The notes below the pieces were generated by a model. The model did not search any database. It was not told the origin of the DNA and saw nothing but the letters and a program-made list of their open reading frames with translations. Position numbers and translations under genes: made by a program. Shown here one piece after another: positions 38,377-46,428 of a stretch of 64,000 bases of DNA (the first letter of the stretch is position 1; the number at the start of each line of letters is the position of its first letter). The stretch is taken from positions 262,405-326,404 of the forward strand of contig NW_003314265.1 of NCBI RefSeq assembly GCF_000143415.4, read 5' to 3'. Source of the stretch: Selaginella moellendorffii. Taxonomy: Eukaryota > Plantae > Lycopodiophyta.

Positions 38377-39820
38377 TCAGTGAAGAAGATCCATGAGCAG
38401 CAGATCACCCTTGGCTGCCGTGGGGCTCAAGACTTCTTGAGCTGTTCTCGGTGGTGGTGATGGTGGTGTTGTTGGCCGTGATGGCAGTGGTGGTGGTGCT
38501 GGTGGCAACGCTCTTGCTGCCACTGTGTTGGATTGGGACTGCATCGAAATGGACAAATCTGTAGTGTCGGAATCTGCCTCGGAGCTGTGACAAGGACTCG
38601 CGGGGCTTGTCCGCTTCGCGGCGACACTCGAGCTCGCGACAAGGTGACGATGGCTGTTCTTGGAGCTCATCTTGGATGAGGACGAGCCCAAGGTGAGGTC
38701 CAGCCCAACTTCGTCGCCGCCTGGCCGCCACCCTTTCTCCACCACCACTGCCGCGGCAGCTCCGCCGTCGTTTTCCACCGCGTGGTGGTCGCGACGACCA
38801 GAGCCACACGCCATCGCGTGGGGACGACGATCGTGGACAACGCCACCTCCCGATCCTCGGCCCTGATCCTCGTCCTCGTAAAAGTGCTCGTCCGGTTCCT
38901 CCTGTTCTTGGAGCTCGACCTTTAAGGTTGTCGCGGCCGAGCGATGCCTCCGCTGGAGGCTCGCAAAGCTGCTGCTCTCGCTGCTGTCGCGATCCAGCGC
39001 CCGCTTCACTCCCGCGAACTTGGAGCCGTCGAGCGAGAACCCTTGCGCATTGGTGGCGGAGTTGTCATTGTTGGTGTCCTTGGTGCAACTGTAGATGGAG
39101 AAGGCTCCAGCCGCAGCGGCGGTGACAGTGCTGAAGTAGCCTCTCCCGAGACGAACTTTGGGAAGCCTTCCGGACGCGAAAGCTTGCTGGGACTGGGAGG
39201 GGGTGACGAAGCCGATGGAGGGCCTTCCGGTGCCGAAGGCGCTGGAGAGCCTTCCGGTGCCAGTGGAAACCGTGGAGCAAAGCAAGCCCCCTTTGAGCAC
39301 CGTCTCCACCGCGTCCTGGCAGTGCTTCCAGCTGCCCGAGCACAGCAGCCCCACAGCTCCAAACACGGGATTTATGGTCCGGCCGCATGCCTCGTAGAGG
39401 AGAGACTGGAACAATGCTGCATGGAGATCAATTTTAAACACCATAAACCAAAGGTTCCAAGAGGAAACTTGCAAGCTATACTAAGAGCACGCAACATCTT
39501 GAAGGAAGGAATAACTCTTCCATGCATGCACTCACAGGAACAACCGATCATCCTGGCAAAAGAATTCGCACAGAATAATCTCTAAAGAGAACTCCCAAAA
39601 AACCATGAGGCTCTCCATCAAGTATATTTACTTTACCGGGTCTTTGACTCTCCGGGACGGAGCTTATCAGCGCCATCATCCCCGCGCGGCCGAAGAATTT
39701 GGCGACGAAGACCGTGGCGTGGCCCTGCGCATCGGGGCTCTCGATCCATCGCAGGCACTGCCGGAGAACGCAGCCATCGCTGCAGCCCTTGCGCAGAACC
39801 CGGCACCCATTGCAGCTCAT
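38377..39820 (-). CDS. LBD: Class II LBD transcription factor (LBD37-42 type), intron 39636-39417
   Basis: [36 protein letters not shown]|[25 protein letters not shown], plus an LDLTLG motif. Confidence 0.95.
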
Positions 39821-40212
39821 GGCGACGCCCTCTCGTTCCTCACACCCAGTCAGACCATCAAAATCGCGGCGAGAAAGAGTAGGGAGAAATGCGCGCGATC
39901 GAGCGAGCGGGCGAGCGAGCGGCGGTGGCAAATCAGCTGCGAGAGATGGAGAGAGAGAGAGAGAGAGAGAGATGGAAAGAAAAACACAACCCTGATGATA
40001 GAAGAAGGGGGGAGAAAAAAAAATTCTTTTTTATTAATTGAGATGCGGCGACATGAAGCTGCACGCTTCATGTCGCCGCATATGCCCATGTGGCATGCTT
40101 GCGTGTCATGACACGTGGCCATTCCTCCTCTGGTTTTTTTGTTTAAATTATATTTTCTTTCCATTCTATTCGTTTCTTTGGTATTTCTCATTGCGATTCT
40201 TTTGACGACACT

Positions 40213-42227
40213 CTACAATAATGGTGGCGATTTTTCCCACGTCGAGTTGGGCAAGATCTTGAGCAAAGCTTGGGCCGTCTCTGGAAGGAACTTTCGCGCG
40301 AATAAAAAACACGGCCGCCGCTCGCCATTCCATATACACGGAGTTCTCGTTACCACAGCCTGCAAGAGGGATAAAAAAAAGAAGAAAAGGAAAAGAGGAT
40401 CCGAGTTAGGCGCGCACAGCTTTTAGAGATTGCGAATCGATTCAATCATACCTTTGCAGTACTTGTCTTGTGCACATATTCGTCAATCATCTGGATGGAA
40501 GCACGCACAGGCACAGGTAAGATCAGTGACACGAACGAATGAGCTTTTGCAACTGTTGCGAGGAGGAGAGAAAACAGGAGACCGAAGCAGCAAGGGAGGG
40601 GTACCTGGAGCTGCCGCAGTTTCTCCGCAGTTACGTCTGCTTTAGTATATGATTTCGGGTGCCATTTGCCTTCGGACCAGTCGACGTGAGTGACTGTCCA
40701 GTTTGCTATCCCTGCCGAATCCATAATCTGGAAATGGATGATCGTGTGAGAGAAATGGAGCAGCAAATGGATGTTCGCTTACGAAGAGGAATGTTTGCAA
40801 GTAATGCTCGTCCGGGTAGCAGTTCCGGTTGTTGTCACCCGGCTGCAAAACAAGACGAGGAAGAAAAGGATCAAGTGAGCATGGGCATCGAAAAGTAGCA
40901 AATGCGACGCTCCTTTACCTTGCAGAACAGTTTAAACTTTCGATAATACACGTGATCAGCGATGACCATAAGAGCATGATGGCGCTGTACTGCAAACCAC
41001 TGAGAGACGTTTATTCTGTCGTTAAACTGCATTGTAAGATAATTGAAGCATTTGAGCAGCACAAACCTGTGCACCTTTTCTCCATTCCCATTGCTCTACT
41101 TGCGGGGACATGTAGCCCATGTATCTTCCCCTCCCATGGGGGCCAGGGTCGTCGAAGCTGTGCCAGTCACGGCCACCATTAAATATTCGCCAGAAACAAA
41201 GAGGAAAGGAGAAGCTTTTTTACCAGTCGACAAAGCTACCACTGAAGTTCAATAAATGATTGTACGTGTAGCGGAAGCTATGGAGCGGTACACACCTGAC
41301 AATTGACTCGATCAACACAAGGAACTTGTGGCGGAGAGACTTACGTGTCGGAAAGAAGAACGAAGTAGGCATTGTTCTGATCGAGAACAGCGTGAGTGAG
41401 GAGTCGCCTCTCCGCATCGATCATGTTGATGTTGCCCCATTGCACCTGTCGCCAGGCACACGAGAATGTAAAAAACAGAAGGAAGGAAAATGCTTGTGAT
41501 TCCGAGGCAATGGAGACGTAAAAGCCATACCTTTTGAGAGCGGATCATTCGTGAGCGAAACAAATCGGTCTTCCACACAACCCTCTTGTTGATGGCCGTG
41601 TCCGAGGCATGCACGTAGATGGAATACAAGCCTTCGTTTCCCTGGCAGAAAAAAGTTATGTTTTTGGAGTTAACACTTATTCTAACTGCGCGGAAGAAGT
41701 TAAGAGACCCTGCCTACAAGAATCCATGCAAGCACACTAGCGAGAAACAAGCAAACAAAAACGAGAAAAGACGATCCCAGCAAAGGAACGAAAATAAAAA
41801 GTGAAAGGCACAAGAAAAAAAGAAGGAACAGGAAACTTACTTTGAAAAAGCGCTCCCAGAGGAGCTCGAAAGGCAAGGCGCCAGCCGTCAAGAACAAGAA
41901 GGCCACCTTGGAAGGACCCGACCGCGCTTGAAAGCTCTGGTGCTTGAGATCCACCGCAAGAGCAAACTCGGCAATCTCGGTGTCGCTCTTGTTCAACCAG
42001 GGCCTGGGCGGAGGAGGAGCCGGCGGAGCGAGCAGCGCAATTCTACACAAATCAGTCCCCAACACTTCACAGGGCGTGATGTGAGTGGGCGTGTAGTGGT
42101 ACGCGATGATGCCGCCCAGCGTGGAGAGGCTGACCAGGAGGAGCAATCCCAGCGTCCAGGCCAGCCATCGCCGCTTGGACAGCTTCATCTGGAGCTTGAT
42201 GTTGGCCACTTCCTTTTGCCAGGACAT
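40213..42227 (-). CDS. Core-2/I-branching GlcNAc-transferase family (DUF266, BC10-like) type II membrane glycosyltransferase
   Basis: N-terminal TM helix, KVAFLFLT..LPFELLWERFF, YSIYVH, CVPLHSF, SQWFAVQRHHA, CYPDEHYLQT, TVTHVDWSEGKWHP; last exon CFLFARKFLPE. Confidence 0.92.
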
Positions 42228-42431
42228 GATGGATCTTACACATCAATCGGCTACCATTGCATAGATCTCGCGACGCCTGCGTTGCGGAATCAAAACCCTA
42301 GCACTGGCGAGGCGATCTTGTACCTCTGTGACAATGCCGCCGCGCCGCTCTCGCCATGGCGCGTCGCTGCATTTGCCCCGGCACGGCGATAAAAAAAGTG
42401 CCCCCCAAGAGAAATATTTTAGGGTTCTTAG

Positions 42432-44328
42432 ATGGAAATGGACGACGATAGTCCAGAATTAGGGCTGGGCGACGACGAGGACGAGGACGAGTACGCGGTG
42501 GTCACGAGGATCTTGGATTCCTTCTTGCATCGGCCTGATGATGGCGATTGCGCAGCTGCATTGCAGCGAGAGGAAGATCCAGGCAAGGATTTCTTTTTTT
42601 TCTTGGCTCTTTAGAGTGGATTGAGAATGCGGTCGTGTCTAGTGCCTGGATCAGCTGCTGCTGCCGACGGCGACGCTTCCAATCAGGATGCCTTGGCGAT
42701 TGTTCCAGTCTCTTATCCGGAGGAGCCGATCGTGGAGAATGCCTCATCATCTTTGGCGATCGTTCAAGGTTGCGAGGAAAATGGAAATGCGCGATTTGAT
42801 GGGGGCCCGCGAAGAACGTTTATCATGGAAATGCAAGTTTTCGTCGAGGACATGAAGAAGAAGAGCCGGAGACGGCTCAAGAATCTCGACCAGGTGATCC
42901 GGCAGGGAATTTTTCTTTCTTTCTTTCTTGTCACTAAGCATGACTGTTTTTTCCCTGATTTTTTAGGACAGAAGGACAAGCTAAAACCTGAAGAAGCTGA
43001 CAAGATCAACCGTGGGTAAGACTTGAGTAGATTTACCTATTGTACTTAAATGGTTGGAGCAGTCTAGAGACGATCACTATGCTGGATATGAAGCTTCAAG
43101 AGCTGGAGCGAGGAGCCAGACATCGCCGTCTCGGCGGTAGAGAATATGAGTCCGATGCATCAAGAAAGCTGAGGTAAGAGAGTAACTTGTTCGAAAGCCT
43201 GTTGAGAGCATCTGTTCTTCTTAGGGATGAGAGGAAGAGACGACGAAGATATGCGAAACTTAAGCGATCTCTGGAAAATCTAGACGCCTTGCATCCTGAG
43301 AAACAAGGTCATGTTTTAAGAAATATTCTTCTAGGACCAAGTGCGAGGTACTTCAGGCTCACGGTGAGCGTGTTTTACTCGGTCAGATTGCTTTATAACT
43401 AGCTGTTTTTTTTTTTCCAGCCAGAGGAGGAAGCGATGGTGGAAGAATTGCTTCGCCAGCAAGACATTGTTGACGACGATGGGGATAATAGCAGTGTTAT
43501 CTCGCATGTCTCAACGGTATTTGCTAACACTCGACGCTGGTATGCTCGCACTAAAAGAATTTGGACCAGGCCTTTGATGTGGAGGGCCAAGAGGCCGTTC
43601 GCCTGGCAGAGATAGACTGCAGGCTAGACCCTTACAAAGAGAGCCACAGCTATTATTCCATTTCACCCATGGCGTCGTGTACGTCTTGTTTTTTCTATTT
43701 TGGTTCTTCTATATTGGTGGCTGACGCAGTGTTTGTTTGCAGCTTCTACTCCAAATAGCAAAACTTTGATGCCTGGATGTCCGTCATTGTCTCCCATGGC
43801 TTCAGGTAAACTTTATCCGTGCACAAGGTATTCCAAAAGATTAAATTCTCTCCAGCATTCTATCAAAATATTCACTCACTCACAAACTCGCGTTTTTCTG
43901 TTTCAGTGTCCACGCCCAAGAGCAAGTCGTATTTCGAGAATGGCGAATCTCGGACCAAGTCAGAGGAGTTCTCCGTGCATCATGAAGCTTTGTCAAGAGC
44001 ACTCGAGCCTTTCGCAGGAACTACAGTTGTGGAGGACTACTTAGGGGAGCTGAAGGAGAGGCGAGAGTACGAAGAAAAAATGGAGGTAACATAATTGTCT
44101 CGCCTCGAGTTTTCACTGAACAACCCGTGGCCGCCAGGAAATCGACAAGAAACTCAGACAACTCCACATGACAGAGGCTCCCGCGGGTATAACAGACGAT
44201 CAACTCATGCAACTCGTAAGCTTCCTTTTGTTTTGGTTTGTTGTTTTGCTTGCTGATCGTCTTTCTGGCCTATGCTCCAGCTGAGTGCCTCAAAAAGGGA
44301 ACAAGAGTTATATGCTGCCATCCAGTGA
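42432..44328 (+). CDS. Putative FSIP1 (fibrous sheath-interacting protein 1)-like coiled-coil protein, ~11 exons
   Basis: Consistent spliced frame containing GHVLRNILLG..EEEAMVEELL, RLAEIDCRL and EDYLGELKERREYEEKMEEIDKKLRQL..TDDQLMQLL. These resemble recalled FSIP1 blocks in the same order. Confidence 0.65.
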
Positions 44329-46428
44329 AACACAACAACAACCAAATGTGTACAATCGCATAGCACAGCCTTCACAAGATCAAGAACAAAAAATGTAAGC
44401 CTTTGCTTTTCCTTTTCTCTTTGTCCCTGGGGGACATTGTCTCATGCTCCTAGTGGGATTGGCTAGCTATGGCTTATAACATGAACATCACTGAGATAAG
44501 AGTAGTATTAGAGAGATTGACAAGCAAAGTAATAGCTAGCTAAGCAATTTATACTAGAGAGAGTGTGCGTGTGTGTATCTTTGTCTTTGCAGTGCTGAGA
44601 TCCTGTGAGATCTTCCTTACTGCCTATCTCTCCAATGAGAGAGAGAAACAGAGGGGCTGAGCTGTATGGAGTGTGTCTATAGGGCCAAGGTGGTGGTGGT
44701 ACAGCATGGACTTAATGCATTAGCAATTAGTGGCAACAAGTTGACGGAATTGAAAGGGGGGAATATATAGGTAGGTCGCTGGCTGGCCGGAAACACAATC
44801 GTACCAAAGTTGTTGTTGCTGCTGTGCTGCTGCTGACCGGTGGATATTTTCTTTTTAGTGTGAATTTAGCTACCAAACAAAAGAGGGAACAAACGAGGCT
44901 TGAAGCACCCCCCACCCCCAAATTCAATTCCTTGAGTGCGATGTCGCATGCATGGGCATGCCATCGTGCCCCATGCTCGGCGCTCAGGCAGGAAGGAGGA
45001 GCTGTAAAAATCCTTCCCCGGGTAACAAGTGACAGTGAGGGAAACCAGGAGGGAGCATATGCTCTGCATCTCTGTGTGTATGTGAAACTCTCGCTCGCTG
45101 CCCTGAGAACGCGCAGTGGCAGCAGCAGGCTTTTGGAGATTTTGCCGTGGCCCCAGAATCGGGAGACAGAGGCAGAGATTGGCTGTTTGTTGTTTCTTTT
45201 TTTCTTTTTTTTCTTTTCTTTTCCTTTAGTGCTTTTTTAGCAGTTCATGTTCAGTTAGGAAGGAGTCAACCACCACTGTTCTCACAACACAGCACCACCA
45301 AATCTTTTACCTCCATTGACGCCACAAGACTGAAAGGAGTGAAAGAGGGATGAGGGAGCAGAGAACAGGCCAGCATTGCACATGCAACAAGCTAGCCCAT
45401 GCCAGGCACACCTCACTGTCATATTCCTCACAAGGTGATGGTGATCATGATGGTGGAGGGCCTGAAATTCAAACCAGCACCACCACCAGTCCCTCCCCCA
45501 AATTGTGCATGATTCCAAAGAGATTATGAGGCATAGAATAGAAGCCCATATGACACATAACATACTGTTTTGGCAATTTTTTATTCAGTATCATATAAGC
45601 ATCCATGCCAGGAATTTGACATACCAGGAGTAACAGTGTTAGCATTGTCCCCCAGGAAGGGGTTAGGTAGGTCTACATCCACATCTTCCTCTTCTCCCAC
45701 AAGAGCAATGCAAAAACAAGGAGATAGAATGAGTTTATATTCCCTTCATTGCCCCCCTTCCCTGCCCTGCCCCTCCTGCCTCCCTGCCTGCAGCACTCAC
45801 AAGAAGAATGCAAACAAATTCAAAGCCTGTGTTATTTTTGCTGCTCCAGAGCTGGGCTCAGCCTACCTTCTAGTAAGTACTGTTTCATCATCCCTACTTT
45901 ATTGGGGATGTTGTTAATGCTTATGCATGCATGGCTGCCTGGGTGAATGGCTGCATCCAAAAGAGTTTAACTCTTGTTTGATCCTTCCTGACTTTACCTG
46001 GCTGTTGCTCCAAACATGCACTCACACATTACATATGATGTGGGTACCTTTCTAAATTTTCGCTTGCACTGTTTTGTGTGTGGTGTTGTCATGCATGCGA
46101 ACAAAAGGCAGGTGTAGTAGATCTGCTTACCAACCAGAGATAAAGAGCAAGGAGTTCTTTCCTCTTTTTAACAGTTGACACAAGATACAAGTTGAGCTTG
46201 AGATCAAAAAGGATTTGTGTGTTGTGTGTTGTGTCCATGCTTCTTGCTCCAGCAAACTGGGAAGCAGCAAGACATTCTTGTTTTACAAACCAAGACATCG
46301 ATGATACCCTTTTCTGTTGGATCAGTGGATGATCTTGGCACCAAAAAAGGAGAGCATTATAACTTGGCACTGGTACAAGGAGCTCAGCAGCAGCAGCAAT
46401 GCATCATACAAAAGGACTGATCGTTGCG

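Follow-up and report, generated by a model that had tools for sequence, protein, structure and literature searches.

FSIP1 appears in the literature as a testis-specific cancer-testis antigen, named for binding to the sperm-tail fibrous sheath, and in reviews it is discussed as a testis protein of animals. In the mouse, the FSIP1 domain extends from Asp4 to Glu405 and includes three motifs (residues 264-300, 310-348, and 374-403) that are conserved in all eight animals examined; the N-terminal FSIP1 motif is not universal among animals (PMC8099781). Mouse Fsip1 binds IFT20, its knockout disrupts flagellum formation, and the protein also affects the acrosome and Golgi vesicle traffic (PMC8099781). 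A disturbance of both flagellum and acrosome formation upon loss of mouse Fsip1 has also been described elsewhere (PMC11276731). The literature that we searched contains no mention of FSIP1 in plants or oomycetes, or of homologs in Chlamydomonas.

We examined a locus of the lycophyte Selaginella moellendorffii in a window of 64,000 nucleotides (the whole stretch of DNA that was analyzed, from whose first nucleotide all coordinates are counted). The gene at this locus, LOC9654264, is expressed, and its C-terminal part very probably makes it a new, divergent member of the known FSIP1 family (PF15554). Like animal FSIP1, the plant protein is non-enzymatic and built of charged helices, and the C-terminal core of the family (profile positions ~224-395) aligns between the two in order. 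Both the FSIP1 family and the plant relatives are found in organisms with flagellated cells. Unlike animal FSIP1, the plant protein has no counterpart of the N-terminal ~220 profile positions or of the vertebrate C-terminal motif, and it carries an acidic N-terminus and a Ser/Pro-rich linker of its own. The Selaginella protein scores slightly below the curated cut-off of the animal-FSIP1 profile, and its mRNA, again unlike that of animal FSIP1, has no apparent restriction to male germ cells.

Gene structure and expression

Unspliced, 42432-44328 contains only short ORFs on the forward strand. The original prediction had proposed that these fragments join in one frame, which proved correct: 11 exons splice into a single frame of 422 codons (1269 nt) starting at the first ATG (Table 1), and all ten introns are present as joints, at the predicted places, in contigs from four sequencing runs that are probably RNA. 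The introns are 47-101 nt long and have GT-AG boundaries, with the exception of intron 1, which is GC-AG. An in-frame stop codon lies immediately 5' of the first ATG (42432), and RefSeq places the start of LOC9654264 at the second ATG (42438), giving a protein of 420 aa. The exon translations map in order on this RefSeq protein (XP_002963951.2, "uncharacterized protein LOC9654264", Selaginella moellendorffii), with only split codons in between. A second, near-identical Selaginella copy or haplotype encodes an intact 422-aa product (XP_024528635.1).

Table 1. Features of the FSIP1-like gene and its head-to-head neighbor, in window coordinates.
Feature	Coordinates	Strand	Evidence
First coding exon of divergent GT14 'Branch' (formerly DUF266) glycosyltransferase-like gene	41841..42227	-	Pfam
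Gap between divergent start codons, 204 bp, mostly 5'UTR of both genes	42228..42431	.	RNA contigs
FSIP1-like gene coding span, S. moellendorffii LOC9654264	42432..44328	+	RNA joints, RefSeq match
Acidic, weakly conserved N-terminal region, residues 1-124	42438..42869	+	24% Asp+Glu
FSIP1-homology core, residues 185-389 = PF15554 positions 224-395/396	43226..44167	+	Pfam alignment
Exon 1, GC donor	42432..42582	+	Joint skipping 60 nt in 4 runs
Exon 2	42643..42893	+	Spliced model, RNA contigs
Intron 2, two acceptors	42894..42971	+	78-nt and 73-nt (42894-42966) forms, RNA contigs
Exon 3	42972..43015	+	Spliced model, RNA contigs
Exon 4: conserved helix, consensus GLExIxKLDMKLQELE; outside Pfam alignment	43063..43173	+	RNA contigs, protein alignment
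Exon 5: basic helix, then most conserved motif LRNIxLGPxxRYFxLT	43225..43363	+	RNA contigs, protein alignment
Exon 6: EEExxVExLL helix, acidic stretch	43421..43516	+	RNA contigs, protein alignment
Exon 7: RLAEIDxxL helix	43570..43678	+	RNA contigs, protein alignment
Exon 8: Ser/Pro-rich, possible tandem duplicate	43743..43805	+	Spliced model, repeat analysis
Exon 9: linker, then VEDYLxExKExR helix	43907..44085	+	RNA contigs; fern genomic fragment
Exon 10: IDKKLRxL ... DQLxxLL	44138..44215	+	RNA contigs, protein alignment
Exon 11 with stop codon	44281..44328	+	Spliced model, RNA contigs

The four runs are public, come from four studies, and were compared as assembled contigs with 42200-44600. 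Spliced mRNA was assembled in all four, with a 3'UTR that extends past 44600. More widely, about 20 runs from 10 studies contain roughly half of the sampled words of 42432-44328, which is approximately the exonic share, and spliced mRNA was found in most of the runs that contain the locus. Such a wide occurrence of the mRNA gives some appearance of expression that is not restricted to sperm, in runs whose tissue labels are coded; these runs are probably ordinary sporophyte libraries.

The contigs also contain transcripts that do not encode the full protein. Two acceptors, separated by 5 nt, are used for intron 2: the 78-nt form stays in frame, and the 73-nt form shifts the frame and meets a stop five codons on. 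The frameshifting form has a greater contig depth than the 78-nt form in three of the four runs, and the productive isoform was seen in three of the four. The 73-nt form could represent unproductive splicing or regulation. Intron 6 (43517-43569, 53 nt) remains unspliced in some contigs, one of them nearly full-length (in a single run) and others of 111 nt (in two further runs). Together, the frameshifted form and the retained intron suggest that part of the transcription of the FSIP1-like gene may be unproductive.

This unproductive part could be spill-over from the neighboring gene on the reverse strand (40449-42227), whose contig depth in the examined runs exceeds that of the FSIP1-like gene. 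Several exons of the neighbor match Pfam Branch (PF02485, GT14, Core-2/I-branching enzyme), and its 5'UTR contains a 47-nt minus-strand intron (42277-42323). The two genes had been predicted to share a divergent promoter of 204 bp. That distance does separate the start codons, but nearly all of it is 5'UTR: contigs of the neighbor extend to 42400, and those of the FSIP1-like gene, on the plus strand, start at or before 42386. The two transcription units thus abut head to head and leave almost no intergenic DNA between them.

The frameshifting splice form and the intron retention would also be compatible with a gene that is in decay or has lost its function and is transcribed only because of the neighboring promoter. 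We consider this extremely unlikely, since the frame is intact over 11 exons, three of four runs contain the productive isoform, the near-identical second Selaginella copy has an intact 422-aa product, and blocks of the protein are conserved with ferns and a liverwort.

Protein architecture and plant relatives

The product consists of an acidic, weakly conserved N-terminus of about 124 residues followed by a helical C-terminal part of about 300 residues, and the protein is rich in Glu, Lys, and Arg. No enzyme signature was found in it, and it is probably a helical adaptor. An AlphaFold model built from a four-sequence alignment contains helices and disordered linkers (mean pLDDT 62). A shape search with this model returned unrelated rows with TM <=0.31 and no meaningful fold match, and sequence and profile searches of the PDB with the protein gave no match.

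Database searches used single exons as queries and then XP_002963951.2, either whole or sliced. The sole exhaustive protein search was made with one weakly conserved exon (exon 9) and returned the 420-aa protein, identical across the exon, plus two unrelated repeat proteins. A word search with XP_002963951.2 found three relatives: a 469-aa protein of the fern Adiantum capillus-veneris (KAI5071221.1, 37% identity, E 4e-38), for which PF15554 is already present in precomputed annotation; a 237-aa protein of Adiantum nelumboides; and a 303-aa protein of the liverwort Calypogeia fissa (CAM6091325.1, 32% identity, E 1.5e-27). As database entries, these fern and liverwort orthologs are only hypothetical or unnamed.

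An alignment of the four proteins has a variable N-terminus followed by five conserved helical blocks, in which its 53 invariant columns are grouped. The strongest block has the consensus LRNIxLGPxxRYFxLTxEEExxVExLL and lacks a heptad pattern. The fern and liverwort orthologs have these five blocks in common with the Selaginella protein at 32-42% identity, whereas the N-termini of the Selaginella, fern, and liverwort proteins show no sequence kinship, and the Ser/Pro linker (with duplicated SPMAS and STPxSK) is longer in Selaginella than in the orthologs. A metagenome scan yielded a single 1-kb genomic fragment, 73-77% identical to Adiantum exons, with an intron at the position of Selaginella intron 9 (after exon 9); one intron position is therefore common to the Selaginella gene and the fern-like fragment. 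The fragment (contig ERZ1034419, 1-1029) holds two exons of a fern-like FSIP1-like gene, has 35% G+C, and is plant DNA within a metagenome assembly.

Two further word searches, one with the alignment of the four proteins and one with the core of the fern protein, found nothing new; low-complexity words had crowded the queries, and some known relatives were missed. Marchantia, Physcomitrium, and algae yielded no homolog in searches insensitive enough to miss known relatives, which leaves a sparse phyletic pattern. All homologs recovered belong to a lycophyte, to ferns, or to a liverwort, in searches too weak to show absence elsewhere.

Comparison with the Pfam FSIP1 profile

The Pfam FSIP1 profile is 396 positions long and has a curated cut-off of 27 bits. 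An exon-by-exon Pfam scan of the Selaginella gene gave no FSIP1 match, and neither the full-length protein nor its slices 205-300 and 350-420 matched Pfam. Residues 140-420 did match, with FSIP1 as the sole family listed (25.5 bits, E 9e-6), at 1.5 bits below the curated cut-off; the acidic N-terminus masks this match when it is included in the query. The alignment pairs Selaginella residues 185-389 with profile positions 224-395/396. No generic coiled-coil family was among the Pfam matches of the Selaginella protein.

The relatives match the same end of the profile. The Adiantum capillus-veneris protein scores above the cut-off both at full length (28.5 bits, E 1.1e-6) and trimmed (31.7 bits, E 1.2e-7), in each case over profile positions 247-394, and liverwort residues 100-303 score 26.5 bits (E 4.5e-6) over positions 251-395. 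None of the three plant proteins has an aligned counterpart of positions 1 to ~220. Judged by these alignments, what the plant proteins share with the animal FSIP1 domain is its C-terminal half alone, which corresponds roughly to the three motifs common to every animal examined. The C-terminal core is present in order in the Selaginella, fern, and liverwort proteins; its mapping onto the mouse motifs is approximate because the mouse domain comprises residues 4-405.

An independent method gave a similar result. In a search by language-model features, 11 of the 30 clusters nearest to the Selaginella protein were PF15554 (score 0.92, with ~200 of 256 features shared), and the commonest taxa in these clusters were Oomycota and Chordata. 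Because three plant lineages match one segment of the profile and FSIP1 clusters are among the language-model neighbors, the Selaginella protein is very probably homologous to FSIP1, as originally predicted.

The original prediction had rested on four blocks set against human FSIP1. The Selaginella strings it quoted are present in the translation; for the human strings, we used the Pfam profile as a stand-in. Residues 185-389 contain blocks 2 and 3 and the larger part of block 4, and these parts are borne out by the profile alignment. Outside the alignment lie block 1 (KINRGLETITMLDMKL, residues ~143-158) and the end of block 4, DDQLMQLL (residues 398-405).

We also considered whether the likeness to FSIP1 could have arisen by chance, as between two proteins rich in charge and helices, in which case the gene would be plant-specific and of some other origin. 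The sequence is indeed rich in Glu, Lys, and Arg, the full-length protein and the single exons have no Pfam match, the trimmed protein is under the curated cut-off, and the fold searches were empty. Yet three plant proteins (those of the fern and the liverwort only 32-37% identical to that of Selaginella) fall on one profile segment, in order, with E-values from 1e-5 to 1e-7, and one of the three, that of the fern, exceeds the curated cut-off. Moreover, FSIP1 is the sole family listed for the Selaginella protein, to the exclusion of any generic coiled-coil family; the best-conserved plant motif has no heptad repeat; and the language-model search also places FSIP1 clusters nearest. A chance match is thus quite improbable.

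Function and evolution

In our view, LOC9654264 is best explained as a divergent FSIP1-family gene whose product, by analogy with the mouse protein, most likely helps to build the flagella of motile sperm, a reading for which we consider the odds fairly favorable. As mouse Fsip1 binds IFT20, the Selaginella protein may act in a comparable way in building sperm flagella, and the gene would have been kept in those plants that still produce motile flagellated sperm.

To our knowledge, plants have no fibrous sheath, which makes it more likely that the shared core acts in flagellum assembly or vesicle traffic. The core would then have an older job, tied to intraflagellar transport or vesicle traffic and not to fibrous-sheath binding, and might, while sperm form, serve the assembly of the flagellum or the vesicle traffic supplying it.

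A true FSIP1 relative could instead have a role in plants that is not specific to flagella, as a general helical adaptor (in Golgi or vesicle traffic, or as a scaffold) expressed throughout the plant. Such a role would accord with spliced mRNA in about 20 runs from 10 studies, assembled in every one of the four runs examined; with a start region head to head with that of a GT14 glycosyltransferase-like gene of higher contig depth; and with the additional effect of mouse Fsip1 on acrosome and Golgi vesicle traffic (PMC8099781). However, the homologs found are all from organisms with flagellated cells, the tissue labels of the runs holding the mRNA are coded, and the 73-nt splice form and retained intron 6 fit leaky transcription outside the tissue that needs the protein. 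We regard a general, non-flagellar role as unlikely.

The FSIP1 family has been described so far in animals, and since relatives occur in ferns and a liverwort, it probably predates the animals. Many ciliary genes have a distribution similar to that of the FSIP1-like gene. The proposal that FSIP1 is an ancient ciliary protein of plants with motile sperm fits the lycophyte, fern, and liverwort homologs together with the oomycete and chordate clusters, and loss of FSIP1 in angiosperms is plausible. A more far-reaching version, which we put forward only tentatively, is that the FSIP1 core represents a flagellum-assembly module of great age in eukaryotes (linked to IFT20 or to Golgi-to-basal-body traffic) that would have persisted in land plants strictly together with motile sperm. 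The FSIP1-like family is not among the entries in the candidate table of Koshimizu et al.

With relatives in a spikemoss, ferns, and a liverwort, in addition to oomycete clusters, the job of the conserved core would predate the fibrous sheath. The link to FSIP1 supplies a name and a testable hypothesis for a plant family annotated only as "uncharacterized", and if the core is an old flagellum module, its ancestral function could be tested genetically in plants, free of fibrous-sheath effects. The gain is modest in that automatic Pfam annotation already marks the fern protein as PF15554.

Repeats and other features of the window

The Ser/Pro-rich linker of the Selaginella protein contains the peptide motifs SPMAS and STPxSK twice each. 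At the nucleotide level, a 19-nt direct repeat is found at the ends of exon 7 and exon 8 (43663-43808) with a spacing of 127 nt. This spacing is exactly that of intron 7 plus exon 8, which suggests from the sequence that exon 8 arose by tandem duplication; the duplicate may be lacking from the fern and liverwort proteins.

Elsewhere in the window, two reverse-strand ORFs at 38377-39931 match the LOB domain (PF03195), one over positions 1-59 (E 9e-12) and the other over positions 54-94 (E 6e-5), and they are probably parts of a single LOB-domain transcription factor gene that an intron interrupts.
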